Virus record (IMG/VR): IMGVR_UViG_3300032675_000001
Span: 124,001 to 188,000 of that record
Strand: one strand, 5' to 3'
DNA length: 64,000 bases
The notes beneath the pieces were generated by a model that did not search any database, was not told the origin of the DNA, and was given only the letters and a program-made list of their open reading frames with translations. The position numbers and the translations under genes were made by a program. Shown here piece by piece: positions 12,001 to 39,854 of the stretch; positions within the stretch are counted from its first letter, which is position 1, and every line of letters begins with the position of its first letter.

Positions 12001-15000
12001 CGATGTGACTCAAACGTCAACCCGATGCCGTATCCATTAACGGTAGTTTGATTTGCACCAATGATTGATAGGTTAATAGTAACTTGCATGATGTTTGGAA
12101 CATCAGTAATGATATAGTAGCCATCAATATTTGTTGCAAAGTTAACTATTGAAAGAGGCTGCAACTTAGTTAGATTATGGGGTGCAGCAAAAGTAACAGT
12201 TGCGGTAGAATTAAGATTGTTCTGAACCTTGATAACTTGACCAACCGATTTCCATGCAAACACGTTCCATTGGTTAAAGAAGTTTGCTATCCATGCATAC
12301 TGACCAACATAAAAGTTTTGTATAGGAACAATAGCACCACTGATATCAACCGCTCTAGGAAGTCCAGCGTAGAAATATGATGACATTGCAACGTCATTAA
12401 AGTTTACGTATCCTGCTGGCGGATACAGATATGATGCTGCTTCAGCCGTAGTGGTTGTTAGGATGTTAGGGTCGGATACCGGAGTTCCATAGTTGAACAA
12501 ACCATACAGTGGAACTTCTTGCATTGCTCCATCAGTACCTCCGCCATTTGTTAAGCTAACAATAGATGGATCACCTGACATCAAATCGGAGTCAATTTGG
12601 AAATCAACAAAATTATTGTTTAATACGCCACCGAACTGGCTTGACAATATTGCCCAGTTTTCATATGTATTGTATGATATACCACCGGTAGGAAGGGTTG
12701 CGCCATCAAATGCGCTAACGGCATTGAGAGTACCCATGTTCTTGATCATATTTTGATAGATTTGAACTTGGGCTTGGCTAGTCAAATCAAGCAGTGCGAG
12801 ATAGTCTCTTGGGCGATAACCTATCAAATTAAACGCCAATAAGTCTGCATCTTCCTGTAGGTTTGCTTGGTTCACATCATAATATAGCGTACTCTCGTAT
12901 GCACGAGTTGATGGGTTAGCCAACATACCAAACTGAATATCAGAATACAGAATCTGTTTCCAATATGTAGGGTCAAATGTTTGTGTTGGCTGCACAATGT
13001 CAAGTGCCTGCCAATACTTGTTCTTATATGTTACGATTTGACCTTTAGTGTATTTTAGATTACCTGTCCACTCTTGGATGTTGTCTTGACTAATAATGAA
13101 ACCGCCAGCATTTACCGTTCCATTCCAATCTGCAGATTTTATGCCACGGACATAGATACGATTTTGACGAAGACCAGTTACTAGATTATAAATGATATCA
13201 TTGAATACGGTAACATTATCAAACACGATGCCGTGTTCAAAGTTGCTCACGTTAAATTGTCCGTAAGCCAATGAGTCTCCCTGATTTAATGGATGTGCAC
13301 TAAATGCCGTGCCATCGCGATTTACGCAGAGATATTTTAAATCAATAGGATACAAGTCCTGATTCAAAATAAAGTTTTGATTCTGAATCGTTAGTGGTTG
13401 AACCACTGCTGTTCCCGGATCAATCTCCATCATTGTTGCTGCTGGATTAAGATTGATTAGACTTCCGTTAGCCCATCCAGTCTGTGCCCAATACAAGAAC
13501 TCATAAACCATTTGTGTCCAGTTAACCGGAACTCCATTTTGAATTTGATCAAAATTCATTCCTTGCTGTTCAAGATATGCGCCATAACTCATCAAGAACT
13601 GAGCAACTTCCTGTGCACTGTAGAATTTAGTGCCATAAGGAACAATGGTTGTTTTAGTTTCCGAATATTTATTAGTTACGTTTACGGATAGCTTTTCTAT
13701 GCTTAGGTTACTGTATCCACCAGTGAATATAGGATTGGCTACAGTAAAGTATGCGAACAGTTGTGAGTTCCCATATACAGTCCAATATCCGTCATTCTGC
13801 TGGATTATTACCCCACTGAAAATTATTTGCTCAAATGGCTGGTTTTCGTATAACAGTACAGAATAGCTCTCATTCGGAATTAGAAGTGAAGCGTTGGTAC
13901 TATTTGGTGAGCCTTTTTCAATATAGAATTGAAGTTGATTTTGATCACTAAACCCAGCTAGGCGATACACCAATCTTACATCAAGATTATTCAACAGTGT
14001 AGTAATGCCGGTGGTTGCATCAACACCTTGCTGTTTGGCAAAGTCAACCATCCAGTTAATATAGCTGGTTTTTGCAATTCCATTTCCATATACTTGAATA
14101 TTATTCAATACTAAATGGCTTCTATCATTTACCAAATATTGATTAAATTCTTCGCTGTACTTATAGTTGTCAAGGTCTACACCCAAGTTGAAGAACTCTG
14201 CCGGTCTTGTGAGAGCGTAGATTCTCATCAAATCAAATGGATATGTAGAACTGCGGCGATATGACAACTCAGTTGGACCATCATCACCAACCTTCCAATC
14301 TTTTTGGAAAGTGCTAGGATCATAGTTGCCCACTACAGCAGTCAATGGAGAAAGAAGATCACCGTTTGAATCAACTGGAATTATTGTAGAAAGTCCGGGT
14401 CTTGCAACCTCTGGATTTATATATGGGTCACCATTATTCCAAATTAAACCTGCTTCCAAGTCTCCCCAAAGAATACCATTGTCGCTCGTGTATGGTGCAG
14501 GACCATATCGTTCTACCCACCAAGTTGGTTGATTTGGAAGACCAAGCATTTCCCATGGAGTTTCATTCGGATTGGTAGTATCATACAGATATTCGTATAA
14601 GCCTCTCCAATAACCCTGCTGAATGACAGTGTTGTTAATCTTCACAGCAGAATTGGTATAGTTATAAGAATATTCGTTATACGCAGTATAAAACTGAGTT
14701 TTATAATCCAGACGATTCTGACCAATCCAGTTCAAAAATGCTGGACTATAGATTGACAAGAACTCAGACCAAGAATAAGTTGAATCTCTGAAAAAGCCAG
14801 GAACAACTTCATATTTGGATATTGGAACCTGTGTGCTCAACTTGAGATTGTTGTAGATTCTATTTTCAAATTCAAACAGGGCTTGGTCACGGAAATCTAT
14901 AAGAACCCCTAGGGATTCATCATAATCACCATATAGCTTGGTGTATGAACCGTCATGGCCTTTAATAAACCATGTTGGTATAGTATAATCAGAATCCAGA

Positions 15001-18000
15001 ACAACTGCTGGCTGGAATGCAGGATACAGACCCAACTTAGTTGGGGTATTTGGCACATACGAACCATATGTTTGATTGTATTCTTTGATCACTATCTGAT
15101 CACCAGCTTGAAGCGTAATGAACACCTCAAGAGTTGGAGAATCAGTGCTGATAGAATAATCCACTCCACTTAACAACTGCTTTTCAATAGCAACTCCCTG
15201 TGTGGTAGTCAAATGATACACGAGAACGCCATTGTAATTTGCGGTCTCAAAATTATAGATTTGACTTAATGGATAAAATGTGCTACTTGAAAGATTGTTA
15301 AAAGTATATGTATTGGAAATATATGGTGTTTGTGATGGCAGCATGTCTGACCAGAAAAATGCCTGATCTGGACTCTTTGCAGAAGTAATCTGCTGCAATG
15401 CTGTATCAAGAATCTGTGATGGGGTAAAACGCTGTGTGTAGTTATAGTTCTGTACAGTGTTGACAATAATCTGTTTGTATGTGATATATTCGCGGCTATT
15501 ATACAACAGTGCATCAAATATGTCATATTGAGTTGAACGCAAGAATGCCCCCGGCAAAACGAGTGATGCCGAGTTCTGAATTATTTTGGTTCCGTATGGA
15601 ACAAGATTTCCCAAATCTCTGTAATTATTTGCTCCAAATACTGGACCAGATGTGTTAGGCGCATTGATATAAATGTCCTGATACTGGTCACGTATATCAC
15701 CCATGTTAGCTGTAGTCAAGTTGTCATTTAGTGGGTTATTGTTTAGATTGATAGGAATATCATAATAACCAAACTGACTTACTTCATCACTAAGAACGAA
15801 TATTTGAATTACTGTTGGGGTTGTAGGTAACGTATTAAGAGTTACAATAGTTAAACTGTTACCAACTTCATAAGTATATGTTGATGGGTCCTGATATACA
15901 TTGTTGATATATACTTTTAAAGTTGGCCATCCTGGGTTTGAATCTGTAGGCGGAGTTAGTGCGGTGACATCACATACAAATGAATTTGAGACTGCCACAG
16001 TTGGATCATAATCATAGCTGAATACTTGATACTGAGTACTATCTGCAATGGCTGTTTGCCATCCCAACTGTCTTACCTCAGTGGTCAGGTCAGTATAATT
16101 ATAAACATAACCTATATTAACGTTTTCGGTTACAGCAGTGGTTCCGTTAACATAAGAAAATGTATCCAAGTTTAAAGAAACGTCAAAGCTTATATCACCA
16201 ATATTGTCAATGCTACTGTATCTGATTGGGAATCCAAGAACAGGATCATTAGTTCCAGTGCCAATACCATATGCAAATATCTTACATCCGTTAAACGAAG
16301 TACTTACATAAACCGATTGATCGCCCAATGATATTCCATTACTGTCAAAAATATCAAATAATGGTGCTTGGTTAACTGTCTTCTTCTGTTGACCAGATAC
16401 CCATGGACCATTTATATTTGCGGGATCGTAAAAGAATGTTAATCCTTGATTATAATATCCACGTGAGATGACGGTCTGTTCTTCTGGTAATACAACACCA
16501 TCCTCTGCTACAGTAAGCGTGATGATTGGAGTTGAGAATGGAGTGATTTGAGAGAACTCAGCAACATAAATTTTGTTTGCTACCTCTGGGTCTTCATCTG
16601 CCGCAAAGATAACGCGAGCGCCCGGAAATAGCGCATAATCGCTTACGTCCAAATCTGATGCGACGATGGACACATTATTTCCTGCGGAAACGTTCTGTGC
16701 AAACTCCCAAGAAACAGTAAGAGTAAGCGTAGTTGTTCCAGAAATGCTGGTAATCTGTGTATTGACTGGCAGCACGCCTGCCGAATCAGCGATAAACATC
16801 AAGTTTGCGAACGATCCTGTTACGGCGCTGGCAGGAACTGTTACAGTAGTAGATGTAGCGTTAGTTACAGGAGCAATGGTAGCAGAATACGTTGTGTATG
16901 TTTGAATGTCAGGATAATAATTAAATGATCCAGCAACCTGATTAAGTGCATTCGTTGCCTTCATATCAATATAATCTACTGGCAATTTACCTACAATACC
17001 AGAATTAAAGAGTTTTAGGTTTGGATAAAACTCAATGATTGGACGTACAGCACGATTGGATGCAGATGCATAAGTTGTGATGATTGTTGGGTCATTGTTG
17101 TATCCGGCAATCGCGCTGATAACATCCGCGTGGAACCAGCGATTGCTTCTGGACCAAGCATTCATGTTTATTGCTCCACGAGCAATAGTGATATAGTCCG
17201 GAACGGCAGGTATATTCAACTCGCCATCATAATTTAAATCATCATACCCAGTTGACGAAAATGGAATATATTCTTCTTGAGTAAATGCTTCTGGACAGAC
17301 CAAAGTGCTTGCAGGAACCAGTTGGATTGCAGTGCCAACTCCTTGCACATAGTACTGGTCCTGTAGATATGTTTCTGGGACCACACTTCCAGAAAATGTT
17401 ACAAGAAGACCGTTTGTGAAGACCACGCCATTAGGTGAGGTGTATGTCTTTTTGCCAAGAATATCCGTATCAACATCAATAGTAACATTTACATTGTTGT
17501 CAACAATGTTGATCACTCCAACGTTTTCTGGATTGGTTCCATCCTGATAATACAATGTATTCAGTGGAGCAGTTATACTTGGAACAAGATTAATATCACC
17601 AAGGACATCACGATAAAAAGGAAGACCGATCCATTCTACACCGTAGGTCGGAATAATATTTACTTGAGTAGGAATAACTGATGTTGGAATCAAACGAATG
17701 ATTGGGTTTGATGGATCGCCAACATATTGCACCGTGTAAAAAGTTTGGTTTACGGTTGAATACAGACCTTCTTCCCACAATCCTTGGTTCACATTTAATG
17801 TCATTGAGCCAGAGCCAGTGGTGAGAGTTAGAGGTGTTCCATTAAGAGTTTCTGAAATAGTAAAATCTGTTGAGTTCAATATTGAACTAATAAAGTATAC
17901 TTGACCAGCAACGATTCCGCCAAAAACTGGATTGTTGCCATTAACAGAAAAGGTTACTGTATTATTCACAGTTAATGATGAGGTGCTTCCTGTTGATAAA

Positions 18001-19064
18001 GTAAATGCATTGTCTACCGAACTTGACGCACTGACATTAAGAGTCAATGGTGGAATAACTACCTGATTATTTGGATCATATGGATCATTAGGAACGCCTT
18101 GATTAGTATCATATGGCGTTTCATTCAAATATTCAGAAGTATATCCTATTTCATTCGGAACACCAGTGTTATAGAACATCACGGTGAGTCCATTGAGAGA
18201 TGTTATACCATCAATGCCACCAAAGCTGTTTACTAACTGACCTTCAACTTCCGCGAATGGGAGAGTGCTTACCACATCAACTGAAACGCTGCTAGGAAAT
18301 ACATATTCACTTTGTGCGTTTGACAAAGGAACATTGAAAATTACCTCACCGCTAGTAGCGCCATTATTTTCAACGCCATCCACATCACGCAAATACAAAT
18401 TAGGATGAACAGTTGAATATCCAGAAATACCCGGCTGAGTCTGAATCCAAAACTGTGATGATTGATTAACATTGAACACATATGAACCACCACGCAACAG
18501 TGTTATTGGAGGATTAACAGAACTAGAACTTGATGTTCCGGTAGTAATTTCATAACCGTTTGGTAAATCAACAACTGTATAGTTTTCATTATTGTAAATC
18601 GTGGAAGTTCCAACGGTCACAGAAGGTGGCCCTTCTGGCAACCAGTAATATTGAGTATAGTTGATAAGCTTGTCTAGATCAGTAAAAGAATCCCATGAAT
18701 AAAACTGACTAGGGAACAATCTACTGTTATTATTTGTTACGCCACTTTCAAGTGATAATGCATCCAGAATTCCCGGATATGTAATAAAATCGGTTGCAGT
18801 TCCCGCTGGTGGATTCACCGAGGTTGATGGTGCCGTAAACACAACTGCCGGGTCCAATTGGTAGTTAGCACGAGTAGTATTTGGTTCAGTGACATAATAG
18901 TCATTGGCGTTAACGCCATACCCAATCTTACTGCCTACGTAGCCCTGAATCTTCATTGAGCTTGGTGGGTTTACCAATTGATCCAGTGTTGCTCCCAAAA
19001 ATTCTGCATTAGTAGCAGTTTGGAAGATGTTTGGGAGAAAGTTTAGTGTTCTTATTCTAGCCAT
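84..19064 (-). CDS. Giant baseplate wedge/fibre-like structural protein (6326 aa) with ~15 repeated small beta modules and FG-GAP/BNR-like propeller segments
   Basis: Single long ORF directly downstream of gp6; INEVKPYH motif typical of wedge proteins; repeated xxFxGxxFGGIxxGxxYYV modules; SxDGxxW repeats; FG/VGAP propeller motifs. Confidence 0.8.
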   Translation of the reverse strand: MARIRTLNFLPNIFQTATNAEFLGATLDQLVNPPSSMKIQGYVGSKIGYGVNANDYYVTEPNTTRANYQLDPAVVFTAPSTSVNPPAGTATDFITYPGILDALSLESGVTNNNSRLFPSQFYSWDSFTDLDKLINYTQYYWLPEGPPSVTVGTSTIYNNENYTVVDLPNGYEITTGTSSSSSVNPPITLLRGGSYVFNVNQSSQFWIQTQPGISGYSTVHPNLYLRDVDGVENNGATSGEVIFNVPLSNAQSEYVFPSSVSVDVVSTLPFAEVEGQLVNSFGGIDGITSLNGLTVMFYNTGVPNEIGYTSEYLNETPYDTNQGVPNDPYDPNNQVVIPPLTLNVSASSSVDNAFTLSTGSTSSLTVNNTVTFSVNGNNPVFGGIVAGQVYFISSILNSTDFTISETLNGTPLTLTTGSGSMTLNVNQGLWEEGLYSTVNQTFYTVQYVGDPSNPIIRLIPTSVIPTQVNIIPTYGVEWIGLPFYRDVLGDINLVPSITAPLNTLYYQDGTNPENVGVINIVDNNVNVTIDVDTDILGKKTYTSPNGVVFTNGLLVTFSGSVVPETYLQDQYYVQGVGTAIQLVPASTLVCPEAFTQEEYIPFSSTGYDDLNYDGELNIPAVPDYITIARGAINMNAWSRSNRWFHADVISAIAGYNNDPTIITTYASASNRAVRPIIEFYPNLKLFNSGIVGKLPVDYIDMKATNALNQVAGSFNYYPDIQTYTTYSATIAPVTNATSTTVTVPASAVTGSFANLMFIADSAGVLPVNTQITSISGTTTLTLTVSWEFAQNVSAGNNVSIVASDLDVSDYALFPGARVIFAADEDPEVANKIYVAEFSQITPFSTPIITLTVAEDGVVLPEEQTVISRGYYNQGLTFFYDPANINGPWVSGQQKKTVNQAPLFDIFDSNGISLGDQSVYVSTSFNGCKIFAYGIGTGTNDPVLGFPIRYSSIDNIGDISFDVSLNLDTFSYVNGTTAVTENVNIGYVYNYTDLTTEVRQLGWQTAIADSTQYQVFSYDYDPTVAVSNSFVCDVTALTPPTDSNPGWPTLKVYINNVYQDPSTYTYEVGNSLTIVTLNTLPTTPTVIQIFVLSDEVSQFGYYDIPINLNNNPLNDNLTTANMGDIRDQYQDIYINAPNTSGPVFGANNYRDLGNLVPYGTKIIQNSASLVLPGAFLRSTQYDIFDALLYNSREYITYKQIIVNTVQNYNYTQRFTPSQILDTALQQITSAKSPDQAFFWSDMLPSQTPYISNTYTFNNLSSSTFYPLSQIYNFETANYNGVLVYHLTTTQGVAIEKQLLSGVDYSISTDSPTLEVFITLQAGDQIVIKEYNQTYGSYVPNTPTKLGLYPAFQPAVVLDSDYTIPTWFIKGHDGSYTKLYGDYDESLGVLIDFRDQALFEFENRIYNNLKLSTQVPISKYEVVPGFFRDSTYSWSEFLSIYSPAFLNWIGQNRLDYKTQFYTAYNEYSYNYTNSAVKINNTVIQQGYWRGLYEYLYDTTNPNETPWEMLGLPNQPTWWVERYGPAPYTSDNGILWGDLEAGLIWNNGDPYINPEVARPGLSTIIPVDSNGDLLSPLTAVVGNYDPSTFQKDWKVGDDGPTELSYRRSSTYPFDLMRIYALTRPAEFFNLGVDLDNYKYSEEFNQYLVNDRSHLVLNNIQVYGNGIAKTSYINWMVDFAKQQGVDATTGITTLLNNLDVRLVYRLAGFSDQNQLQFYIEKGSPNSTNASLLIPNESYSVLLYENQPFEQIIFSGVIIQQNDGYWTVYGNSQLFAYFTVANPIFTGGYSNLSIEKLSVNVTNKYSETKTTIVPYGTKFYSAQEVAQFLMSYGAYLEQQGMNFDQIQNGVPVNWTQMVYEFLYWAQTGWANGSLINLNPAATMMEIDPGTAVVQPLTIQNQNFILNQDLYPIDLKYLCVNRDGTAFSAHPLNQGDSLAYGQFNVSNFEHGIVFDNVTVFNDIIYNLVTGLRQNRIYVRGIKSADWNGTVNAGGFIISQDNIQEWTGNLKYTKGQIVTYKNKYWQALDIVQPTQTFDPTYWKQILYSDIQFGMLANPSTRAYESTLYYDVNQANLQEDADLLAFNLIGYRPRDYLALLDLTSQAQVQIYQNMIKNMGTLNAVSAFDGATLPTGGISYNTYENWAILSSQFGGVLNNNFVDFQIDSDLMSGDPSIVSLTNGGGTDGAMQEVPLYGLFNYGTPVSDPNILTTTTAEAASYLYPPAGYVNFNDVAMSSYFYAGLPRAVDISGAIVPIQNFYVGQYAWIANFFNQWNVFAWKSVGQVIKVQNNLNSTATVTFAAPHNLTKLQPLSIVNFATNIDGYYIITDVPNIMQVTINLSIIGANQTTVNGYGIGLTFESHRVTNPSDIEGLDLTQADFVDNLVWVDTNVDGDWAVLLKSNTYEMQNELEQPTSTTFGSAVAFTNSAGYLIGDAGAGKLYCYTYNALSESYNLSQTITNSTSFGSQIVYSEANNIYVVSQPTGTPNVFIYVLNSSPISDNLIAYQTISAPGGVTNWGSTMAMSKDSNWLYISDIVNNNVYVYRKENIPLQAGHFVSGQTYIITEVGTTDFTTIGAVYNEVGITFVATGSGTGTGTATQCTYQQASVINGSTYGYVSGDDFSAALSTDQDGSLLVVGAPLKNYSGTIEDWGQVSVFNRTEQNFLAQYTSNAGQAITFPLAWTPVATSTITASATASGTNLITCSASMTSYPVNTPIVFTGNLSGTNISTNQVYYIASTSTNTITIKTSRNTTTPVSLATASLSGVQVYVQVTPLYVSVNGSLVNDCNYAAVGSNFVYYGGLNAGDIINVSDSQFFLAQTFNSNYHDRTGIHFGYSVANSNGGSDVLVGSPFEISDINGQEGAVYKYSNGGAKYGVVIGSGGCNVTAQSTILINGFAVTIPTGNATVVANAINNAGIINVQAAATSDNNIIIQCINSALAQVNQELVITATNTSGILSEIGITTYTETQILQCPYTTGPTQFGHTIKVDQFNNIVVSAPSGTRYEGTVFDFVDYIDLDNDTVFDNNATQFVDSYPNAGAVYMFQYMADYNESLITPGQYVYAQSINDNSTSYGNSPMYGSSLDFNDNTVVVGTPNFVPGLYNGQVVVYTNATGTPVWSVYRSSSPVVDINTIQNTQLYSASTNETLVNFDYIDPLQGKILGAARENLDYITSADPAQYNSNLASNNGNMWGASQVGQLWLDTTNVRWVNYHQNDVVYNSKYWGSVFPGSDVAVYSWIASFIPPNQYQGPGVPYNINLYCINAVLNASNVVVPVYYFWVRNTNTIFTQANKTLADSSVASYIANPRGSGISFMAPLLPNTFAMYNSLQFFNGTDTVFHVGFSNGNNDDIAHQEFALIREGFAEDFLPGIPPITKHPTVITTVQGNTTTVSSGEPSSLYARMLDSMAGCDQFGAVVPDPFLPAAVQSGVQVRPRQSFFYDRFMAINNYLTYANGILAQYPITELRPDATFLFASGEFFNTSDYWSYTYWWADGYSDSTKSLYQVPYYADLATLNVSTGTLVTVQQNGNGSAEIYRNDGNGVWTRVGLQNGTIAFNTSLWDYADAQIGWDGSFFDTGSFDTYPSQETYYIIRALNEQIFTEDLLQYRNLSLILLFQYIQSETVESQNFLPWLNKTSLLDVQHTLRELLPYSNYVTDNFDFLSGYINEVKPYHVLIKDFLYDYTGSEEYTGNITDFDVPAQFNSQYQNFISPQIVYSGADTEYEYLNTDSIWQTAPYTQWYQNYGLSLTGQPDYQLTTLTSYMTTSSTFMIVNNANGFPSSGIITIDDEQIGYETVDPALNMISGLTRGANNTTITTHIPGAPIIMDLPPVVLLDGGNDYQNPPRVTAYIDTSIYPAPTVPAELEAVMSLGTVIGINVINPGQGYVAMPEIIIDPSYVINFADTAINELLNTIVVYAPSLVTGQVVQYRAGTDDVGIGGLQDGQWYYVNVLQTVPTSVIALYTTYSDAINDKNRVNIYSIGSTSSLTLSAGARAFGISTSYPVRENNITIKYDRTTYNSQILDWESGAYYGSFFAGSYENILQVSSSDIQLQSVNPNIASILSSAQGATFEIVDVSNNNQLDWSSTIRYVSGTYSANNAIRLVPQGSTEPNASGSTIGFYVGMPVKFIGAVVGNLVNEQLYYVASVINETDFTVSQTIGGPVVSLTTATVSAAGLQCYIAQSVNTAVLTINYPGILNVTNTTSGTNYLTVPTSVIGTGGTSGFYPGLSVFFSENVFGGIVENQVYYINTVIDQQTFTISPYDTQLTLTATATSATGNIITTSLNPGFNLNDPIIFTGTTFGGITAGVTYYVSELISETEMTISATLNGPVVTLTTATGSMTVTNQSDSPVLTTASGNMTMNVSLPVSPGQVNGQQFTLYGTSGQYPNITELTVGNLIERQVDATVSGVNIIALDINSDGTDLFYAGMPIQFSSAIGGLSTGTTYYVLTYSGMSDVTNIEISATQTLGSDYGNVIVCNTTSYLYSGMPIVFSGQSLGGLIIGQIYYVKTITSGTQFTVSTTEGGSVVALTDQTGEMTGVGTPYITVSTSIGGLPVSLSSSTSGSTLTQYITSTPTIDISYVLGGYRAIFTSSGSGFAIDNIITISGALVGGTSPLNDVTLSVNSINSTGGIINAICSGTVPYTSQQYYLKVISPTQLEVYSDQLLSQPVSGVDFPFVGFTTDTVTAVSTSNNSITISNTGQFNINDAVVFTGNTDVSASTIVEYQTYYIVSILNGTQLQVSATPGGSAINIASAASTNFTIAKAGSFAFLPEPFFFNQSIVKFNGRVYVCVVSNNDSEFVLGKWELIDSDDPRLNAMDRVIGYYQPTVNMPGVDLTQLFEGVTYPNAIYQGNAFQPSLQYPLDTVLQDQPFYPNGINITSIIYNDGYYFATANLPTYSAVIYSTDGINWLINKLLNANVDITSISYANGNYLITSTNSATPLLTSLDGFNWTSGGNIITYDSDSNSTNDNLISSVGLTLQSSSYSNELWVAVGNNIITSQDGVNWTEVHTYNTTYEVEMNGITYVNSQYFTGYVAVGSGVTYSYAGPVSALVPTSIVSYSTDSIKWIDAPLTNQYFNGIKTTPVPITENGWNSVAVNNVTGQIIAVGQNGVIYTSLNAVNWLGLNEVDALSVNTYTNAINVTNTSGFTVGESVVFNNSFSSIVAGTHYTIASITSTSSLTLTGVTLTNGSVPAYTVMSSVNNTPTLNNVVYENGLWLAVGNTGTIITSANGVNWTVQTSGITENLYGITYTNNTWVVTGDNNAVLSSTDGVNWTYTSIFTPVPPVYDVQGGTFQSGYGPEELVPGVVWDNFAMTVITRPGITWPVEQYGHNGYNVVSTQMVPQSATQTVYSFADIVHYPAQVFVQKIDATSCLGTTLTLNTDYTVNWINKTITLTNPLPFTPLMDTLRVDVYEVGNGSQLVKSNTDVDPIRTDPVTGFNQIYVDCNYSAAIYNGSGVVKPGSYDIDVQATQTIASDNSIVCAGVSQLSINDAITFEGITFGNIVEGTTYYVKSVSTATDSITVSDSFNSMTGQAGPIFELTDATGSMYVIIQAGTGTTWTSPIIYHNGTKLLCGGTNIVTNTTAGTNTITTNSTTGMVTGSPITFSANMFGPDIVPLQTYYVADVLGTTTFTISTSPTGSPVLPLTTQQGGATFITYDYAFGIQPDGISAMIIFSTDAYSNNNDYLSYTLFGQTEPQQIGYSIPETQWFTGTGSQTVFDLSNNVQGLVNPASAVVEVSGLRQKPSTYTIAPANNTITFNSAPALNAPIAVTTYNDTTQQYLNTQTITASGSNSVYAISTISNNITAPLANTTATATASGTNYITVASTSGFVVNQTVFFEGTGFGGISTSGTVYFVKSIVNSTTFTISATQGGSALSLTTASGNMLVTVGGQPAVRVTTNGTNGFTTGEIVRIDGTAGSTQLNGNYYYVRVISSTQFDLYTQAYSSSLNAVNYPVTAISAYTGGGYTWIQGSYYLVDTTASATASINNAITVSSTAMLDVNTPVLFSKLGSLDGTNILGGLIQGTTYYVNEILSPTTFNVASSQYGSVVALSNASGTVNVTQWEQTNVDRLWVTINGYRVPSSCLRMNSSNELSILAPISSGDTVIITNMIPTATPSEEIYMNFVNQTGEATVYRANTGTRTWLTQPLSLESDLIYVQDVTSVTNNVIQTSVTPEAALNEFGDNVYSIGLNNVDKTLITGITVYNNRTNQYIPTSSYQVVIVDLAPVLEINVGSYITVGDSLTINTLVGNTIYVNGEQIKFNIVNLTNNTLGGLQRGANGTGAQLYIPQYTEAFSLTSNNELPSAYYNQTWNSYVYNSTLGDPLQISQTIPAKFLEVDVT

Positions 19065-33660: not shown

Positions 33661-34615
33661 GTATTGTAAATTAGAGGCAGCGCACACCTTCAAAAACGGA
33701 ATTCATTGTTGCAGTAAAAATGTGTCTGGGTGTCCAGAAATCCGAGCAAGACGAGAGAATACCGCTATGGTGAAATACGGAGACAAAAACTTCAAAAACC
33801 ACACCAAAGCAAAAAAAACTAAGCTAACACGGTACGGTGATGAAAATTATAATAATCGCCAGCAAGCAGAAGCAACGACAACTAAAATGTATGGAGTTTC
33901 CAATGTTAGTAAAATAGAAGACATAAAAGTAGCGAAACAATCTACCTTTAGTAAAAACTATCCTATAGGGTCATCCGAAAGAACTGACTTAGGTAATACC
34001 AGGGCAATCTCTTGGAAATCGAATGTTGTGTCCGAGATTACGGACAAAATAAAAACTACGTGCGCAGATAGGTATGGAGTGGACAATCCGAATAAAAACC
34101 CAGATATCGTTTCTAAACGAAAGCAAACAAACTTGGCTAGATACGGACAGCAGCCCGGATTCGGCACGGAGAAGTTTAAAAACACCATTAGACAAAAATA
34201 CGGGGTGGAGAATGTCTCGCAACTCGCAGAAATTCACGAAAGACAACAGCGACCTAATTGGAAATCATACACTCTTCCTTCCGGAAAAATTATTAAGGTG
34301 CAAGGATACGAAAACTTAGCGCTGGATGCATTGATGTCGGTGTATGACGAAAATGATGTTATTACGGTTAGGAAAGAAATACCGGCGGTTTGGTATGAAC
34401 ACGATAACATACGCAGAAGGTATTATCCAGATATGTTAGTTGTGCCTACCAACACGATAATAGAAGTTAAATCGGAATACATTTTTAAAAATAATGAAGA
34501 AGTCAACATGAAGAAAAAAGATGCATGTTTATCCATGGGGCTGGCATTTGAGTTTTGGATATACGAATCAAAAACACACGAACTAAGAAAGCTAATATAT
34601 CCCGCATGTCAATAA
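33647..34615 (+). CDS. Putative free-standing homing endonuclease with a C-terminal PD-(D/E)xK domain
   Basis: N-terminal Cys cluster; repeated KYGVxNxS DNA-binding-like motifs; YYPD...IIEVKS; inserted between gp47 and gp46 and overlapping both. Confidence 0.7.
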   Translation: MIICEYCKLEAAHTFKNGIHCCSKNVSGCPEIRARRENTAMVKYGDKNFKNHTKAKKTKLTRYGDENYNNRQQAEATTTKMYGVSNVSKIEDIKVAKQSTFSKNYPIGSSERTDLGNTRAISWKSNVVSEITDKIKTTCADRYGVDNPNKNPDIVSKRKQTNLARYGQQPGFGTEKFKNTIRQKYGVENVSQLAEIHERQQRPNWKSYTLPSGKIIKVQGYENLALDALMSVYDENDVITVRKEIPAVWYEHDNIRRRYYPDMLVVPTNTIIEVKSEYIFKNNEEVNMKKKDACLSMGLAFEFWIYESKTHELRKLIYPACQ

Positions 34616-36684
34616 TTTTGAAAAACATAACACTGCGTAATTTTCTTTCAATCGGGGCAGTTTGCCAAGCTGTCAACTTTGATAGCAAAGAACTAACACT
34701 CATCATGGGTCAAAACTTAGACCTTGGTGGAGATGGTGCAAGAAACGGAACAGGAAAAACCACCCTGATTCAAGGGCTGGCATATGCTCTATTTGGATCA
34801 CCGATCAATAGCATTCGCAAGGATAACCTAATCAACCGAACCAATGGTAAGGGAATGATGGTAACTCTAGAGTTTAATGCAAATGGCATTGATTACAAGA
34901 TTGAGCGTGGACGTAAACCAAACATTCTTAAGTTCTATGCAAACAGCAGCTTGCTAGAGGGTAAGGATGATGCTCAGGGAGAAAACAAGGAAACACAGGC
35001 TGCAATTGAGCGCGCTATTGGTATGTCTCCTGACATGTTCAAACACATTGTCGCGTTGAACACGTATTCTGAACCATTTCTGGCTATGAAGGCAAATGAT
35101 CAACGTCAGGTCATTGAGCAGTTACTTGGTATCACTTTACTGTCTGAGAAGGCAGAAGCCATCAAGGAAAAAAGTAGGGCGAACAAGGAAAGCATTCAGC
35201 AGGAAGAGTTCAAGGTAAAGGCCATTGAAGAGGCAAACAGGCGCATCCAAGAGCAGATTGATGCGCTTAAGAGAAGACAGACACTTTGGATCAAAAAGCA
35301 CGAAGAAGATTTAAACAAGCTTGTCGCAGATTATGACGAACTGACGAAGATTGACATTGATGCTGAACTTCAAGCACACAAAGACCTTGCTGCGTATCAG
35401 ATCACCAAAAAGAAGCACGATGATCGCAATGCTCTTATTTCTCGCCAGATAGCATGGAAGCAGAAGCAAGACAAAGACATTGCTTCTTTACAAAAAACTT
35501 ACGATACACTGAGTCGTATTGACATTGATGCTGAACTTCAAGCACATCTTGACTTGGTTACATACAACCAAAATAAGACACAGGTTGATAATGCAAAGAT
35601 CAGAGTAAAACAACTTGAAACGAGTTTAGTTAAAGACCAAAAGGCAATTGACAAACTCACTAGTGAGATTAAAACTCTTGAGAGTAACAAGTGTTATGCC
35701 TGTGGTCAAGACTTCCATGATGATAGCCATTCGGACGTTATTAACTCCAAGCGTGAACTCTTATCATCTGCTATGGCAGAGTTGGACCAGACCAAAAATG
35801 ATTTAGAAAAAAATAAACTTTTAATCGTAGATTTTGGTCAACCTCCAGTCACTTACTATAAGACTCACGCCGAAGCAATCAAGCACAGTTCTGAACTTGA
35901 AAACATTCAAAACCAAATCATAGCGAAGCAGAACGAATCTGATCCATATGCGGAGCAAATCTCAGAAACTGATGCCTTAGAAACCCTTGGAACGCTTCCT
36001 AAGACTATATACGATACGGAGACACAGGCGATTGAACATCGGTCTACTGTGGCAAGCTTATTGCAGCAGATTGAACGTAAAGTCGCGGAGAGTGATCCTT
36101 ATGCGGAACAAGTAGTTGAAATGGAATCTCAGGCATTACAAGTTGTGGATTTTGAAAAGATCAATGAACTGTCAAAGTATGGTGATCACTTGAAGTTTCT
36201 ACTGGACTTGTTGACGAGCAAAGATTCCTTTGTTCGCAAGAAGATCATTGATCAAAACTTGTCATATTTGAACGCAAGACTTACTCATTACTTGGACAAA
36301 ATGGGACTTCCTCATACTGTCATTTTCAAGAATGACTTGTCGGTTGAAATCACTGAACTCGGGCGTGAACTTGATTACTACAACCTATCACGTGGTGAGC
36401 AGAACCGACTAATTCTTGGGTTGTCGTTTTCGTTTAGAGATGTATGGGAGAATTTATATTATCCCATCAATGCGATGTTTATTGATGAACTGCTGGATAA
36501 TGGTACCGATGCGGTTGGGATGGAAAATTCAATGACGGTCCTTAAGGATATGAACAGGACCCGAGGAAAATCAATATGGCTAGTCAGCCATAAGGATGAT
36601 CTAACCAACCGCGTCAATAATGTTCTCAGTGTTGTCAAATCGGGTGGGTTCACCAGTTATTCAATGGTAACTGAGTCAGAATAA
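34606..36684 (+). CDS. Recombination ATPase, gp46/Rad50/SbcC-like (probable start 34606)
   Basis: Walker A NGTGKT, CYAC zinc hook, LSRGE signature, FIDE Walker B, VSH. Confidence 0.92.
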   Translation: MSIILKNITLRNFLSIGAVCQAVNFDSKELTLIMGQNLDLGGDGARNGTGKTTLIQGLAYALFGSPINSIRKDNLINRTNGKGMMVTLEFNANGIDYKIERGRKPNILKFYANSSLLEGKDDAQGENKETQAAIERAIGMSPDMFKHIVALNTYSEPFLAMKANDQRQVIEQLLGITLLSEKAEAIKEKSRANKESIQQEEFKVKAIEEANRRIQEQIDALKRRQTLWIKKHEEDLNKLVADYDELTKIDIDAELQAHKDLAAYQITKKKHDDRNALISRQIAWKQKQDKDIASLQKTYDTLSRIDIDAELQAHLDLVTYNQNKTQVDNAKIRVKQLETSLVKDQKAIDKLTSEIKTLESNKCYACGQDFHDDSHSDVINSKRELLSSAMAELDQTKNDLEKNKLLIVDFGQPPVTYYKTHAEAIKHSSELENIQNQIIAKQNESDPYAEQISETDALETLGTLPKTIYDTETQAIEHRSTVASLLQQIERKVAESDPYAEQVVEMESQALQVVDFEKINELSKYGDHLKFLLDLLTSKDSFVRKKIIDQNLSYLNARLTHYLDKMGLPHTVIFKNDLSVEITELGRELDYYNLSRGEQNRLILGLSFSFRDVWENLYYPINAMFIDELLDNGTDAVGMENSMTVLKDMNRTRGKSIWLVSHKDDLTNRVNNVLSVVKSGGFTSYSMVTESE

Positions 36685-36761: not shown

Positions 36762-37517
36762 ATGAATATTTATCATAAAACATTACCATATATCTATAAA
36801 TGGATACATATACCTACCGGAAAATGGTATATTGGTTCTAAAGTGAGAACTGGATGGAACCCCTCGCGACATGAAGAGTATATATGTTCGAGCAAAGAAG
36901 TCAAGCCATTGGTTATGGAAAATCGAGATGATTGGGAATATCATATTCTGCATACTGGTGATGCAGCTTATATTGTCAATTTGGAAAAAATTATACTGTC
37001 TGAATTAGATGCTAGGAATGACCCAATGAGTTATAACCAGCACAACGGGGATGGACTATACAATAGATATGGTGTTAAAGAAAATGAAAACACTAGACTT
37101 AAGAAAAGTGCCGCTCGCTTAGCCGAAAAAAACCCAATGTATGGTAAAAGAGGTGACCTGTCCCCACATTATGGTAAATCACATTCATCTTGTTGGAGAA
37201 AAAACCAAAGCATTGGTCTAAAATTGTATAATGAAAATAGACCTGCTGAGCATAACAATAATATTTCAAAAGCATTGAAGGGTAACCCAAAACTATCAGA
37301 AAAAATGATTGGAGAAAATAACCCGCGTTATGGCAAACCAGCTTTAGAGCACAACAAACGCGCCTCGTCAATTGCAAATTCAGGAAACAATAACCCCATG
37401 AAAAAACCAGAACATCAGCGTACATGTGAACATTGCTGTAAAACCGTGGCTAAAAATCATTATACACTATTCCATCGGGACAAATGTAGATCAAAACCTG
37501 CAACCGACATAGAATAA
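36762..37517 (+). CDS. GIY-YIG-like (Seg-type) homing endonuclease with NUMOD3-like repeats
   Basis: YIYKW...WYIGS; NPMYGK/NPRYGK repeats; C-terminal CxxC..H..C. Confidence 0.75.
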   Translation: MNIYHKTLPYIYKWIHIPTGKWYIGSKVRTGWNPSRHEEYICSSKEVKPLVMENRDDWEYHILHTGDAAYIVNLEKIILSELDARNDPMSYNQHNGDGLYNRYGVKENENTRLKKSAARLAEKNPMYGKRGDLSPHYGKSHSSCWRKNQSIGLKLYNENRPAEHNNNISKALKGNPKLSEKMIGENNPRYGKPALEHNKRASSIANSGNNNPMKKPEHQRTCEHCCKTVAKNHYTLFHRDKCRSKPATDIE

Positions 37518-37554: not shown

Positions 37555-38148
37555 ATGCCATCACCACAGAAAGCTAAAGGTTCTTCCTTCGAACGTGAAG
37601 TCGCAAAGTTCCTGTCTAAAACCTATAACGAAAGTTTCATCAGAGCACCTGGCTCTGGAGCTTATGTTGGAGGAAAGAATCAGGAACGCAAGCAGTTTCT
37701 ACACGAAGGACAGATTCGCAGCTTCAAAGGTGACATCGTGCCCGGACAGACTTTCACTAAGTTTAACGCAGAGTGCAAGTCATATGCAGACTTCCCGTTT
37801 CATTTAATGTTAACGGGAAGTTGCAAAATCCTGGATACTTGGATTGAACAGCTTATGGCTGTAGCAGAAGAAGATGATTGTAACATTCTATTCATGAAGT
37901 TCAATCGTAAGGGACGCTATGTCGCTGTTCAAGCCAAGTATACTTGGGTAACAGATTATTTCATATACTACAGTTCCGCCAAGGTTGGCGACTGGGTATT
38001 CATTGAATTTGATACATTTTTTGAAAACAACAAAGACCTTTTTAAAGCATATTCAGGCTCAACATCTAGCTCATTATCTAGCCCATCACCTAGCCCATCA
38101 GACACCATGTCAGACACATCAGCTAACATTCTCACCATAAACATTTAA
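37555..38148 (+). CDS. Holliday junction resolvase-like PD-(D/E)xK nuclease (Hjc-type)
   Basis: KG..FEREVA, R.P.SGA, GDI and ECK motifs. Confidence 0.7.
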   Translation: MPSPQKAKGSSFEREVAKFLSKTYNESFIRAPGSGAYVGGKNQERKQFLHEGQIRSFKGDIVPGQTFTKFNAECKSYADFPFHLMLTGSCKILDTWIEQLMAVAEEDDCNILFMKFNRKGRYVAVQAKYTWVTDYFIYYSSAKVGDWVFIEFDTFFENNKDLFKAYSGSTSSSLSSPSPSPSDTMSDTSANILTINI

Positions 38149-38176
38149 CTCAACATCTAGCACATTTCCTAGCACA
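38058..38176 (+). repeat. Cluster of short C/A-rich direct repeats
   Basis: CTCAACATCTAGC at 38058 and 38149; CTAGCCCATCA x2; CAGACAC x2; CTAGCACA x2. Confidence 0.6.
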
Positions 38177-38189
38177 AAAACCCCACATT

Positions 38190-38760
38190 GCTGTCTGGTG
38201 TACGTTCGTAGACCCTCCTTGAGGAAGCAGGATTTAGAACCCCTGTAGTCCGGATTCTGGAGTATGCCTGACCGAGAGGTCAGTGCCAGATTCAACATAG
38301 TCTGGTGGAGTCTGATAGTAATATCGACCGCAAAAGCGTTAAGCAGCAATATGGTGTTTAACATTTGTGCTTTAGGAATACCGACAGGGCAATCGCACAG
38401 TAGGCGAACCCTGAATGAGTCCGTATTTAGTTTATCTCGTGGATACGGAACATGCGTTGTCGAGGAACTGGGTTAAACCAGCAGCCTCACTACACCTCCA
38501 TAAAAACCTTACAGGACAACCGGTGGCGAGCAGTAGCGTAAAAAGGCTAACTGATCGGGAGAGAGATAATAATGTATACGATGGGCCATGGCATATCGGA
38601 ATATTAGTAGTGCTTTCTGCGGAAAGCACTACTATGTCCTCCAAACCGGCAATTGTATCCGAAGTGACAATCTTTCTTAAAGAAATTAAAGCTACTAAAC
38701 GATAAAAAAATGAAAACGAACGAAGTGAGTTTTCAGATGAACGAAGTTCATCTCTTGACT
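38190..38760 (+). ncRNA. Candidate large structured ncRNA / structured origin element
   Basis: No credible ORF; more than 12 consecutive stem-loops, including GAGA and GTAA (GNRA) loops, a 13-bp cTGCGg (UNCG) hairpin, a long-range GTTGTC/GACAAC pair and terminal cGAAg hairpins. Confidence 0.6.
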
Positions 38761-38805
38761 TAAACAAAAGATGAACTCCTTAATATACGGCTGGGATAGG
38801 TGGGT

Positions 38806-39036
38806 TTAGAAATAAGGCAGTTGTGATTGCTTGGTTATTTCTAGATTGTTCTCAATGATTTCATTGATAGACTGACGTTCAAAAGCAGACATATTTAATA
38901 TGTCCTCATAAGAAGCACCTCCACGCATGTGCCATGCCATGGATAATGCTCCTTTCTTCACTCCCTCAACTTCAACTTCGTATTGTTTAATAAGCTTCTG
39001 AATTTCCTCGGGTGTGGAATGCAGAAGCTTTATTCG
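38806..39036 (-). CDS. gp51-like / gpT-like segment, probably translated by -1 frameshift from the upstream gene
   Basis: 76-codon open -1 frame RIKLLHSTPEEIQKL...WHMRGG.SYEDILNMS.FER...LPYF with no start codon in its first ~25 codons; not in the ORF track. Confidence 0.7.
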   Translation of the reverse strand, partial: RIKLLHSTPEEIQKLIKQYEVEVEGVKKGALSMAWHMRGGASYEDILNMSAFERQSINEIIENNLEITKQSQLPYF

Positions 39037-39854
39037 AAAAAATCCACTGGGCTTAGTGTGAATGGTTGTTCATATTCGTGCCCACATCCGTCACACTTAA
39101 TGTTAAGTGGTTTTATTTCTGTTGCGGCTTTAAGTTCACCGTTGTAATCTCTGATCTTATTGTAGACATTTCTATCACAGTTCTTCAAGTAATCAAGGAT
39201 GAATTCTTTTTGATCTACTCTAACGCTTGAAGTTTGAATATACTCAATAGTCTGTGTCAATAGATTCATTGTGAGAGCAGTAATCTTTTCTAACGTATCT
39301 TTAGTGATTCTGTTCTTTTCTTCTTCTGATTCTGAGTTTTCAATGTTCACAAATGTACGCTGAAGTTCAAAATTTGCCAAAGCGGCATCATTCATTTCCT
39401 TGTAAGTAAGAGGTTTGAACTTGATGCTCAAGTCTCCAACAGTCAAAGTGTTATCGTAATTTCCTGGCTTTAAGGTATTAAGAATAGGAATAAGATTGAC
39501 GCCATAAGTGTTGGTTTCTGTGCACGAAGGGCATGAAGTTTCAAGCTCAAGTACATCACCGGAAGAAGCAATCTTGATGGCGATCAAAATAGCATCCATA
39601 TCGTTGCTGCTAATTTTCCAAGGGTCTTTGATCACTGGAACACAACTTTTCACAATGTCAACGAGTGCCGTACCATTAAAAAGTGCGTCCGGTGTTCTGG
39701 TGGTGATTTCATCAATAGCAGTCATGGGATATACTGGGATTTCTCCAGTTTCAGGGATGTCAATCATGCCATCCACGTAATCTTTTCCTCCGGAAGGAAG
39801 CTTAAAATATACAGCCGGTCTTCGGAAGTATTGCTTTAGTGGGTTGTTGTTCAT
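39030..39854 (-). CDS. Baseplate hub / tail assembly chaperone, gp26-like
   Basis: NPLKQYFRRP..Y..LPS.G, PMTAIDEI, two CxxC pairs, ends DFFE. Confidence 0.7.
   Translation of the reverse strand: MNNNPLKQYFRRPAVYFKLPSGGKDYVDGMIDIPETGEIPVYPMTAIDEITTRTPDALFNGTALVDIVKSCVPVIKDPWKISSNDMDAILIAIKIASSGDVLELETSCPSCTETNTYGVNLIPILNTLKPGNYDNTLTVGDLSIKFKPLTYKEMNDAALANFELQRTFVNIENSESEEEKNRITKDTLEKITALTMNLLTQTIEYIQTSSVRVDQKEFILDYLKNCDRNVYNKIRDYNGELKAATEIKPLNIKCDGCGHEYEQPFTLSPVDFFE

Follow-up and report, generated by a model that had tools for sequence, protein, structure and literature searches.

A candidate new large structured RNA of jumbo phages

The locus and its conservation

The 64,000-nt stretch of viral DNA analysed here, referred to as the window, contains an unusually long gap between two convergent gene groups. 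On the left, a PD-(D/E)XK endonuclease gene (37555-38148, +) follows the SbcCD genes. Its product matches Pfam PF24608 (E = 1.4e-24) and PHROG 244, which is labelled RusA-like, thereby amending the designation of resolvase given in an earlier note on this sequence. On the right lie a conserved 51-aa ORF (38806-38961, -) and a T4 gp26-type baseplate hub gene (39030-39854, -; Pfam PF12322). G+C is 0.46-0.48 across 38100-38600 versus 0.37-0.41 in the flanks, and the + strand folds better than shuffled sequence (z = -6.2, versus -4.2 for the minus strand). The earlier note proposed that 38190-38760 encodes a multi-domain non-coding RNA read rightward, which it could not match to a known class, an interpretation supported by our comparative data. 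Family-wide conservation, however, delimits the RNA to 38186-38654 (+), which is 469 nt here and 332-470 nt (median 365) in relatives.

Homologues occur in 236 fetched IMG/VR loci (designated by L numbers below). An nhmmer profile built from an alignment gave full-length hits in 216 loci, comprising 132 distinct sequences in 26 clusters at 80% identity. There is one copy per locus and one in the window, where it scores 177.9 bits (E = 2.5e-49) against a covariance model of the family. Of the first 110 distinct copies, 91 have the nuclease upstream on the same strand and the small ORF and hub downstream on the opposite strand; tblastn finds the latter two genes in nearly all loci. The RNA was not found elsewhere. 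A blastn search of the 1.8-kb region against 50,697 phage records gave no match, indicating no cultured phage carries this exact family. Moreover, a scan of 185,579 species genomes for a 20-nt core pattern gave 3 hits, where we estimate about 17 by chance, and none was confirmed by nhmmer. Thus, the RNA was not found in bacterial or archaeal genomes.

The element does not appear to encode protein. Each of the six frames carries a mean of 4-8 stops in 110 homologues, relatives have different short ORFs with none shared, and the four ORF pieces within the gap have no Pfam hit, nor do the two searched against PHROGs have a PHROG hit. Rfam 15 (4227 covariance models, including group I/II introns, RNase P, tmRNA, 6S, SRP, GOLLD, ROOL, OLE, raiA, HEARO and riboswitches) gave no hit at gathering score in the whole window, in 6 related loci or in 5 loci of cultured relatives. 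At E up to 10, on the element of the window and of the compact relative L029, only noise of 12-15 bits appeared. ARAGORN found no tRNA or tmRNA in the window, and literature searches revealed no description of this RNA.

Covarying helices and pseudoknots

We examined base pairing on a MAFFT alignment not fitted to the structure. Fifty-two core pairs were 95.9% paired, whereas shuffled partners gave 81.5% (0 of 500 shuffles reached the observed value) and partners slid by 1-3 columns gave 31-41%. Changes on both sides were seen at 42 pairs and in 617 cells. G.U wobbles outnumbered A.C by 137 to 49, which favours the + strand. Every stem listed in the earlier note is present, and five are kept in relatives through compensatory changes: H5, H6, H7, the long-range pair PB, and H9. 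The note overlooked two pseudoknots, the UACCG/CGGUG helix closing the core, and the 5' helices H1-H3.

The 5' domain begins with hairpin H1 (38198-38213), which carries a G-G mismatch in the window and whose six pairs show GC/AU/UA/CG exchanges (for example, GC:20, UA:8, CG:8 at one pair). H2 (CUCC 38215-38218 with GGAG 38259-38262) encloses the internal loop UUGA/GGAUUCU and the extended hairpin H3 (38223-38251). H2 is 100% paired in 73 sequences, with rare compensatory changes at 3 of its 4 pairs; its pairing led us to reject an anti-Shine-Dalgarno role for CCUCCUU. The H3 closing pair G-C switches to A-U in 6 sequences, and the H3 core pairs covary. A variable peripheral region follows (38264-38374). 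Most relatives have a single hairpin here (H4; 38268-38283 with a GAGA loop in the window), often capped by a GNRA loop (GCGA, GUGA, GCAA, GUAA). The stems at 38268-38283, 38285-38306 and 38310-38328, cited in the note as part of the structure, lie in a lineage-specific expansion of about 110 nt that, among the sequences aligned, is shared only with L004, the closest relative of the window phage. One compensatory change separates the two in the third hairpin (GTC/GAC versus GTT/AAC). A leader pairing (38184-38193 with 38344-38356) is also predicted by the minimum-energy fold and is kept in L004 through GCUG/CAGC becoming GAUG/CAUC.

The core is a four-way junction (38379-38525) closed by PA (UACCG 38379-38383 with CGGUG 38521-38525), which stacks on PB (GUUGUC 38456-38461 with GACAAC 38515-38520). 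PA is 97% and PB 95% paired in 72 sequences, with rare compensatory changes such as GUCAC/GUGAC in L032, the most divergent member, and GUUAC/GUAAC in L048. Within the junction, H5 (38385-38413; CAGGG/CCCUG and UCG/CGA around the conserved internal loop CAA/A) is 99.7-100% paired, with counts of GC:37, CG:29, UA:5 at one pair and GC:47, AU:25 at another. H6 (38415-38453; AUG/CAU and UCCGU/ACGGA, the latter at 38420-38449) is 99.8% paired, with changes on both sides at all 8 pairs. H7 (GAGG/CCUC, 38462-38488) has a variable top and is 79.5% paired on the MAFFT alignment, where a one-base register shift affects part of the family. The joining strand that follows, up to 38514, holds CACUACA (38488-38494), CUCC (38496-38499) and the family-conserved ACAG (38511-38514) just 5' of PB; ACUAC is invariant in 131 of 132 sequences.

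Two pseudoknots lock this junction, which is rich in invariant unpaired bases, and both covary. Their 3' strands (38558-38569) follow H8 (38527-38557), an 11-bp hairpin with changes on both sides at 10 of 11 pairs and 92.7% of cells paired. In PK1, the H6 loop (38432-38437) pairs with AGAUAA (38564-38569); it is 99.8% paired and 5 of 6 pairs covary. In PK2, CUCC (38496-38499) inside the PB loop pairs with GGAG (38558-38561), just before the PK1 strand; it is 100% paired and all 4 pairs covary, with the window having CUCC/GGAG where most relatives have UCCC/GGGA. The window copy forms every one of these core pairs, and the family shares the invariant ACUAC and ACAG-GCAAC-CGG motifs.

Downstream, 38570-38603 (family consensus GAUGACGGGCAUGGCAA) is conserved, but no consistent covarying helix was found there or between the 3' tail and any other region. 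Pairing of the tail CGGCAA with the PB 5' strand was rejected because both sides are invariant and it is mismatched in about a third of sequences, as was pairing between the two CAUGG-containing elements, because the window changes one without the other. The element ends with H9 (38604-38617 with 38622-38634) and a conserved tail ending CGGCAA (38604-38654 in all). H9 is 13 bp here and 10 bp in relatives, and is nearly invariant in sequence, with compensatory changes in the window (UAG/CUA versus UGG/CCA), L003 and L032. The cUGCGg loop highlighted in the note is specific to the window, as relatives mostly have GAAU. Two further hairpins, hp1 (38712-38734) and hp2 (38735-38753), also covary (for example, AU:25, CG:11, UA:7), and the loop motif GAACGAAGU occurs only at these two places in the window. 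An A-run precedes hp1 on the + strand in all lineages sampled, corresponding to a U-run after it on the minus strand, whereas no U-run follows hp2 on the + strand. These hairpins are therefore most likely the intrinsic terminator of the convergent small-ORF/hub operon, to which the last 60 nt of the span proposed in the note probably belong.

Possible roles of the RNA

Collectively, the data indicate that 38186-38654 (+) is a gene for a stable, compactly folded non-coding RNA of a family absent from Rfam 15. We consider a real conserved structured RNA on the + strand nearly certain and its novelty relative to catalogued families probable. In many relatives the fold starts about 10 nt after the nuclease stop codon, so co-transcription with that gene is likely but inferred; we propose the RNA is made as the end of the rightward SbcD-SbcC-nuclease transcript or from a promoter inside the nuclease gene. 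Consensus scans revealed no recognisable sigma-70 promoter or + strand terminator in the window, and in the absence of expression data the transcript itself remains a prediction. About 50 invariant nucleotides sit in the junctions, while peripheral helices vary freely, accept insertions and, at H4, often carry GNRA caps. This pattern, together with a double pseudoknot, is that seen in ribozymes and in RNA subunits of RNPs. Our preferred explanation is thus a trans-acting catalytic or protein-binding RNA that serves the phage during infection, acting through its folded core and not by coding or simple antisense pairing. We assign this overall reading a probability of roughly 0.55, although the ribozyme or RNP-core mechanism is only a tentative guess, as sequence alone cannot reveal catalytic or binding activity and large structured RNAs with no known catalysis exist (GOLLD, ROOL, OLE).

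A less likely alternative is a cis-acting, riboswitch-like RNA whose core senses a ligand or protein and whose H9 5' strand (GUAGUG) pairs either with its hairpin partner or with the identical core CACUAC, controlling read-through into the convergent late operon, stability of the nuclease mRNA, or translation of the AUG abutting H9. The short distance from the nuclease stop codon would also fit a cis-acting 3' UTR element. H9 is far more conserved in sequence than a plain hairpin needs to be and its 3' strand duplicates the core CACUAC, which hints at a conformational switch. In L032 all three segments changed together (core CCUUAC, H9 5' strand GUAAGG, H9 3' strand CCUUAC), and an AUG immediately follows H9 in 131 of 132 sequences. 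However, the three-way change rests on one lineage, a scan for more L032-like variants returned only L032's own contig, and in L003 H9 changed (GUAGAG/CUCUAC) while the core did not. Furthermore, no gene follows on the + strand, H9 is not followed by a U-run, and the mini-ORF after H9 is 10-25 codons long with no conserved peptide, a 1-nt indel placing CGGCAA in different frames in different relatives. About 370 nt with two pseudoknots is also much larger than known aptamers.

Similarly unlikely is a self-assembling structural RNA in the manner of ROOL, GOLLD or OLE, which form homo-oligomeric complexes (PMC12286853). The RNA is large, phage-borne and richly pseudoknotted, and conserved loops and single strands, such as 38570-38603 and the tail, have no intramolecular partner. 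Nonetheless, it shows no similarity to the ROOL, GOLLD, OLE or raiA covariance models even at E up to 10, and the palindromic CCAUGG elements are not kept in all members.

A guide or partner RNA for the adjacent nuclease is improbable. The fold starts 1-100 nt after a nuclease gene on the same strand in most loci, and stays next to the nuclease where another gene is inserted in L063. Yet in the divergent loci L190, L200, L123 and L206 the upstream gene encodes a different nuclease, a 147-aa GIY-YIG protein, with no PD-(D/E)XK gene present. No hypervariable guide-like segment with conserved flanks was seen, the nuclease is an ordinary PF24608 protein that many phages carry without this RNA, and the adjacency can be explained by the conserved gene order of the clade. 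A DNA-level element, such as a replication origin, packaging site or recombination hotspot, might be suggested by the position at the junction of convergent transcription units beside SbcCD and the nuclease, but compensatory changes preserve long-range helices and two pseudoknots that double-stranded DNA function does not require, the wobble asymmetry is strand-specific, there are no iterons or AT-rich unwinding repeats, and G+C is higher than in the flanks. Least likely is a diverged member of a known RNA class or a decayed or recoded protein gene, given the silent Rfam models, the negative ARAGORN search, the absence of an interrupted host gene and the stops in all six frames.

Comparison with known RNAs

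The putative lncRNAs ncRNA001-004 of PA5oct (PMC7318152) are non-coding transcripts of a jumbo phage from the same broad Rak2/PA5oct supergroup, found by RNA-seq in ORF-free gaps. They lie at 8.3, 22.0, 103.1 and 246.1 kb, while the hub slot is near 77 kb; ncRNA001, 002 and 004 lack the GUUGC...ACAGAGCAAC module. The omega-RNAs of TnpB/IscB (OMEGA) systems are likewise structured, pseudoknotted RNAs of a few hundred nt encoded on the same strand directly at the 3' end of a nuclease gene. Here, however, the neighbour is a 190-aa PD-(D/E)XK or 147-aa GIY-YIG protein and not a RuvC-type TnpB or IscB, there are no transposon ends and no variable guide, and the HEARO model does not match.

The RNA has a nested-then-crossing order (PA 5', internal helices, PK2 5', PA 3', H8, PK2 3') that recalls P3 / P4-P6 / P7 / P8 of the group I intron core (RF00028), along with GNRA-capped variable peripheral hairpins. 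Group I introns are common in T4-like phages, and a homing endonuclease gene lies 1 kb upstream. Nevertheless, there is no RF00028 hit, the nuclease ORF is complete through its conserved C-terminus with the next genes on the other strand, the PK2 5' strand lies inside PB and not after a P6-like hairpin, and no P1, internal guide sequence or conserved G-binding pair could be identified. An apparent resemblance of ACAGAGCAACCGG to CR-V of RNase P RNA does not extend to the topology, as two hairpins here separate the 5' strands of PA and PB, and no RNase P model hit was obtained. GOLLD, ROOL and OLE resemble this RNA in being large (over 350 nt), in having multiple pseudoknots, in their discovery by comparative genomics, often in phages or prophages, and in having no known function when discovered; these orphans have yielded unexpected structures (PMC12286853). 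The present RNA is not next to tRNA genes.

The closest system we identified is a ~500-nt conserved element, unannotated or covered only by tiny hypothetical ORFs that are probably not genes, in cultured Rak2-like jumbo phages (Asteriusvirus, Eneladusvirus, Mimasvirus), for example E. coli phage ph0011 (L214:7232-7736) and Serratia phage BF (L213:7191-7729 and L249:401-881). We found no description of it in the literature. It is about 150 nt longer, has a long-range closing helix (GAUGAG/CUCGUC) and an internal hairpin followed by a U-run, and lacks recognisable H2, PA and H9 equivalents. Serratia phage BF has at least two full copies, and BLAST reports 4-5 places per genome, not necessarily full copies. 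Searches with the family profile and covariance model (filters off) against the hub loci of Atu_ph07, PA5oct, Phosso, Serratia BF and E. coli ph0011 gave no credible hit, and a profile of the cultured-phage element found nothing in the window or the fetched loci. Homology is likely but not proven. In ph0011 we read a sigma-70-like TTGAGA-18-TATAAT upstream, and the element is divergent from the neighbouring endonuclease VII gene, suggesting that this possible relative is an independent transcription unit. A more speculative and doubtful reading is that both RNAs form an unrecognised class of large catalytic or RNP-core RNAs specific to this supergroup of jumbo phages (E. coli 121Q/PBECO4 group, Serratia BF, Erwinia, Cronobacter and others), with a double-pseudoknot active core, expressed as its own gene and needed for efficient infection. 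The element occupies the same slot (baseplate hub, small ORF, the element, then a junction-resolving nuclease and SbcCD) with the same orientation relative to the hub, and displays the same core order. A hairpin loop pairs with the strand just after a second pseudoknot strand (7 bp; AUUGUAU/AUACAAU changes to GUCGAAU/AUUCGAC), and a strand inside the loop of helix GUUGC/GCAAC pairs after the next hairpin (5 bp, covarying). That helix is preceded by ACAGA, giving an identical 11-mer, ACAGAGCAACC, with the matching CGUUGC opposite it, and the 9-nt spacing between the pseudoknot strand and ACAGA is the same in both groups.

Gene neighborhood, relatives and coding potential

The RNA locus belongs to an uncultivated jumbo phage, and the stretches around it match two IMG/VR contigs of 360 kb and 90 kb at 100% identity. 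The baseplate hub protein encoded nearby is 30–34% identical to those of Agrobacterium phage Atu_ph07, Pseudomonas phage PA5oct and the Rak2-like phages of enterobacteria. On the + strand, an SbcC-like gene (34555-36684) is followed by a GIY-YIG/NUMOD3 homing-endonuclease-like gene (36762-37517) and a PD-(D/E)XK endonuclease gene (37555-38148; Pfam PF24608, termed RusA-like by PHROGs), which the earlier note had called a resolvase. A gap of 657 nt (38149-38805) separates the nuclease from two minus-strand genes, a conserved 51-aa ORF (38806-38961) and a T4 gp26-type baseplate hub (39030-39854). The nuclease ends in a low-complexity Ser/Pro/Thr tail, and DNA in this region (38040-38180) carries repeated CTAGC-containing motifs, with CTCAACATCTAGC occurring at about 38059 and again at 38150, just after the stop codon. 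Many relatives have CACAGAACCC just upstream of the RNA, and these elements could be processing or promoter signals. Elsewhere in the window, a single minus-strand ORF of 6326 aa (84-19064) is followed on the same strand by ORFs of 1123, 1409 and 857 aa.

The earlier note had described the gap as densely tiled with stem-loops, and this observation is real. G+C rises to 0.46–0.48 in 38100-38600, against 0.37–0.41 around it, and the + strand folds at z = -6.2 and the minus strand at z = -4.2 relative to dinucleotide shuffles. All of the stems listed in the note are present. To find relatives, we conducted protein-anchored and DNA-pattern searches of IMG/VR, which brought in 246 loci. A profile of the gap finds exactly one hit in each of 236 loci, giving 216 full-length copies, 132 distinct sequences of 332–470 nt and 26 clusters at 80% identity. 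The closest relative of the window copy is 85% identical, whereas most others are 68–76% identical.

Gene order is constant. In 91 of the first 110 distinct copies the nuclease is upstream on the same strand, with the small ORF and hub downstream on the opposite strand, and the exceptions are mostly contig ends. In 7 of the 110 distinct loci, the nuclease tblastn hit was scored as overlapping the RNA coordinates, with an offset of about -920, which could be an artifact of the distance calculation or a rearrangement. Four divergent loci (L190, L200, L123 and L206) carry a 147-aa GIY-YIG protein in place of the PD-(D/E)XK gene directly upstream of the RNA, which may represent non-orthologous replacement of the junction-resolving nuclease. 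One lineage (locus L063) has an extra 248-aa gene (5060-5806) between the RNA and the small ORF, with the RNA remaining next to the nuclease gene.

Relatives have different short ORFs in different frames, and across 110 homologues every one of the six frames carries 4–8 stops on average. The four ORF pieces in the window gap have no Pfam hit, and the two tested have no PHROG hit. Thus, the region is not protein-coding, and it is not a gene that needs to be read through stops. An AUG abuts the 3' end of hairpin H9 in 131 of 132 homologues and opens an ORF of 10–25 codons (23 codons in the window, 38634-38705). However, the peptide is not conserved and an indel shifts the frame of the conserved CGGCAA between lineages, so this is probably not a gene.

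Covariation-supported structure and strand

Helices were evaluated on MAFFT alignments that were not fitted to any structure, and those described here are kept by compensatory change. The 5' domain contains H1 (38198-38213), followed by H2, in which CUCC (38215-38218) pairs with GGAG (38259-38262). H2 is 100% paired in 73 sequences and its rare changes are all compensated. H3 (38223-38251) has a closing G-C pair that becomes A-U in six sequences. A variable hairpin, H4, is often capped by GNRA, and in the window and its relative L004 it is expanded by about 110 nt of extra hairpins (38264-38374). The core comprises PA, where UACCG (38379-38383) pairs with CGGUG (38521-38525), H5 (38385-38413), H6 (38415-38453), PB, where GUUGUC (38456-38461) pairs with GACAAC (38515-38520), H7 (38462-38488) and H8 (38527-38557). 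Two pseudoknots were also identified. PK1 joins the H6 loop (38432-38437) to 38564-38569, and PK2 joins 38496-38499, inside the PB loop, to 38558-38561.

For the core, 95.9% of cells were paired (52 pairs in 72 sequences), as compared with 81.5% when shuffled (0 of 500 shuffles reached the observed value) and 31–41% when the 3' partner was slid by 1–3 columns. Changes on both sides were seen at 42 pairs (28.0 shuffled) and in 617 cells (167 shuffled). PK1 is 99.8% paired with 5 of 6 pairs covarying, and PK2 is 100% paired with 4 of 4 pairs covarying. The window itself carries a double compensatory change in PK2, having CUCC/GGAG where most relatives have UCCC/GGGA. H9 (38604-38634), a hairpin of 10–13 bp, is almost invariant in sequence and is compensated in the three lineages where it changes. 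The stretch 38570-38603 and the tail (to 38654) are conserved, but no partner could be established for either. In the paired cells, G.U and U.G occur 137 times and A.C and C.A 49 times, with many of the A.C cases lying in the misaligned H7. At one H8 pair, 20 sequences have U.G, which would be C.A on the other strand. The RNA is read from the + strand.

Two hairpins at 38712-38753, which the earlier note had included in the element, also covary. An A-run precedes them on the + strand and no U-run follows them, whereas on the minus strand they are hairpins followed by a U-run, directly after the small ORF. We therefore assign them to the terminator of the hub operon. Their loops nonetheless show more conservation than a terminator needs. 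GAACGAAGU occurs only at these two places in 64 kb, and both hairpins end in a C-GAA-G cap. A similar AACGAAGUGA / AACGAAUGAAAUGAG motif appears, without explanation, in the same slot of Serratia phage BF (locus L213, near 7148-7156) and E. coli phage ph0011 (locus L214, near 7170-7200).

Possible function

Collectively, these data show a conserved, single-copy, + strand, noncoding RNA with a double-pseudoknot core. The interpretation in the earlier note of a multi-domain noncoding RNA holds, with corrected boundaries and gene names. Comparative support is already strong, although evidence of expression or activity is lacking and the mode of action is inferred. The RNA is inferred to act through its fold, as the distribution of conservation is that of ribozymes and RNP cores: junction nucleotides are invariant, helices change sequence freely, GNRA caps sit on variable peripheral helices and insertions occur only at the periphery. 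We tentatively favor a catalytic or protein-binding trans-acting RNA, with a probability of about 0.35.

Of the alternatives, a cis-acting switch survives best but appears unlikely. This idea rests on one observation. The invariant core CACUAC (38488-38495) is identical to the 3' strand of H9, and both complement the H9 5' strand, which may indicate an alternative pairing. All three changed together in L032, a divergent homologue, but in the homologue L003 H9 changed alone. A self-assembling ornate RNA is a slightly weaker possibility. A partner RNA for the nuclease is very unlikely, a DNA-level element marginally more so, and a diverged known class or coding gene is the least likely explanation.

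Comparison with known RNA families and cultured phages

Against every catalogued RNA family the element is probably new. Rfam 15 gives nothing at gathering score in the window and in 11 other loci, and only noise of 12–15 bits at E up to 10 on the element itself, in the window and in the compact relative L029. There is no tRNA or tmRNA, and no cultured phage has this sequence among the phage records searched. The 20-nt core pattern is not truly present in 185,579 species genomes, as its three hits are at chance level and fail the profile. Literature searches found no description of the RNA. The PA5oct lncRNAs reported by RNA-seq (PMC7318152) lie elsewhere, and the three that were retrieved lack the core module. 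In Sinorhizobium phage Phosso (locus L212), an unannotated minus-strand gap of about 1 kb (8233-9246) lies between RNase HI and the resolvase in the same neighborhood. It is visibly G+C-rich and full of stems and may hold another large RNA, although neither Rfam nor R1, our covariance model of the window RNA family, hits it.

A likely relative was found in cultured Rak2-like phages, which keep the same gene order of hub, small ORF, gap, junction-resolving nuclease and SbcCD. The gap is unannotated and 375–1000 nt long. It carries a conserved, structured element of about 500 nt, found at L214:7232-7736 (-) in E. coli phage ph0011, at L213:7191-7729 (-) and L249:401-881 in Serratia phage BF and in further loci of cultured phages (L248, L250-L253). 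The ph0011 gap is conserved at 65–72% identity over about 480 nt in phages of Escherichia, Salmonella, Klebsiella, Erwinia, Serratia, Pectobacterium, Yersinia and Cronobacter. It usually has no annotated feature, although some records place tiny hypothetical ORFs over it, and BLAST reports 4–5 matching places per genome. Serratia phage BF has at least two full copies, one in the hub slot and one at 258.8 kb. In ph0011 the element is divergent from the endonuclease VII gene and a sigma-70-like TTGAGA-18-TATAAT is read upstream of it. There it must be its own transcription unit.

Eight copies of this element align into a structure with many compensated pairs, within which we find the same core module as in the window RNA. 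Neither the profile HMM nor the covariance model crosses between the two groups, so common ancestry is likely but unproven. Nonetheless, the order and spacing match. A hairpin loop pairs over 7 bp with a downstream strand (AUUGUAU/AUACAAU changing to GUCGAAU/AUUCGAC), and helix GUUGC/GCAAC has one compensated variant, GUUAC/GUAAC. ACAGA lies directly 5' of GCAAC, giving the 11-mer ACAGAGCAACC, which is identical to the consensus of the window's family, the window copy itself reading ACAGGACAACC. Finally, a strand inside the loop of that helix, 9 nt before ACAGA as in the window family, pairs over 5 bp just after the next hairpin and sits immediately 5' of the return strand of the first pseudoknot.
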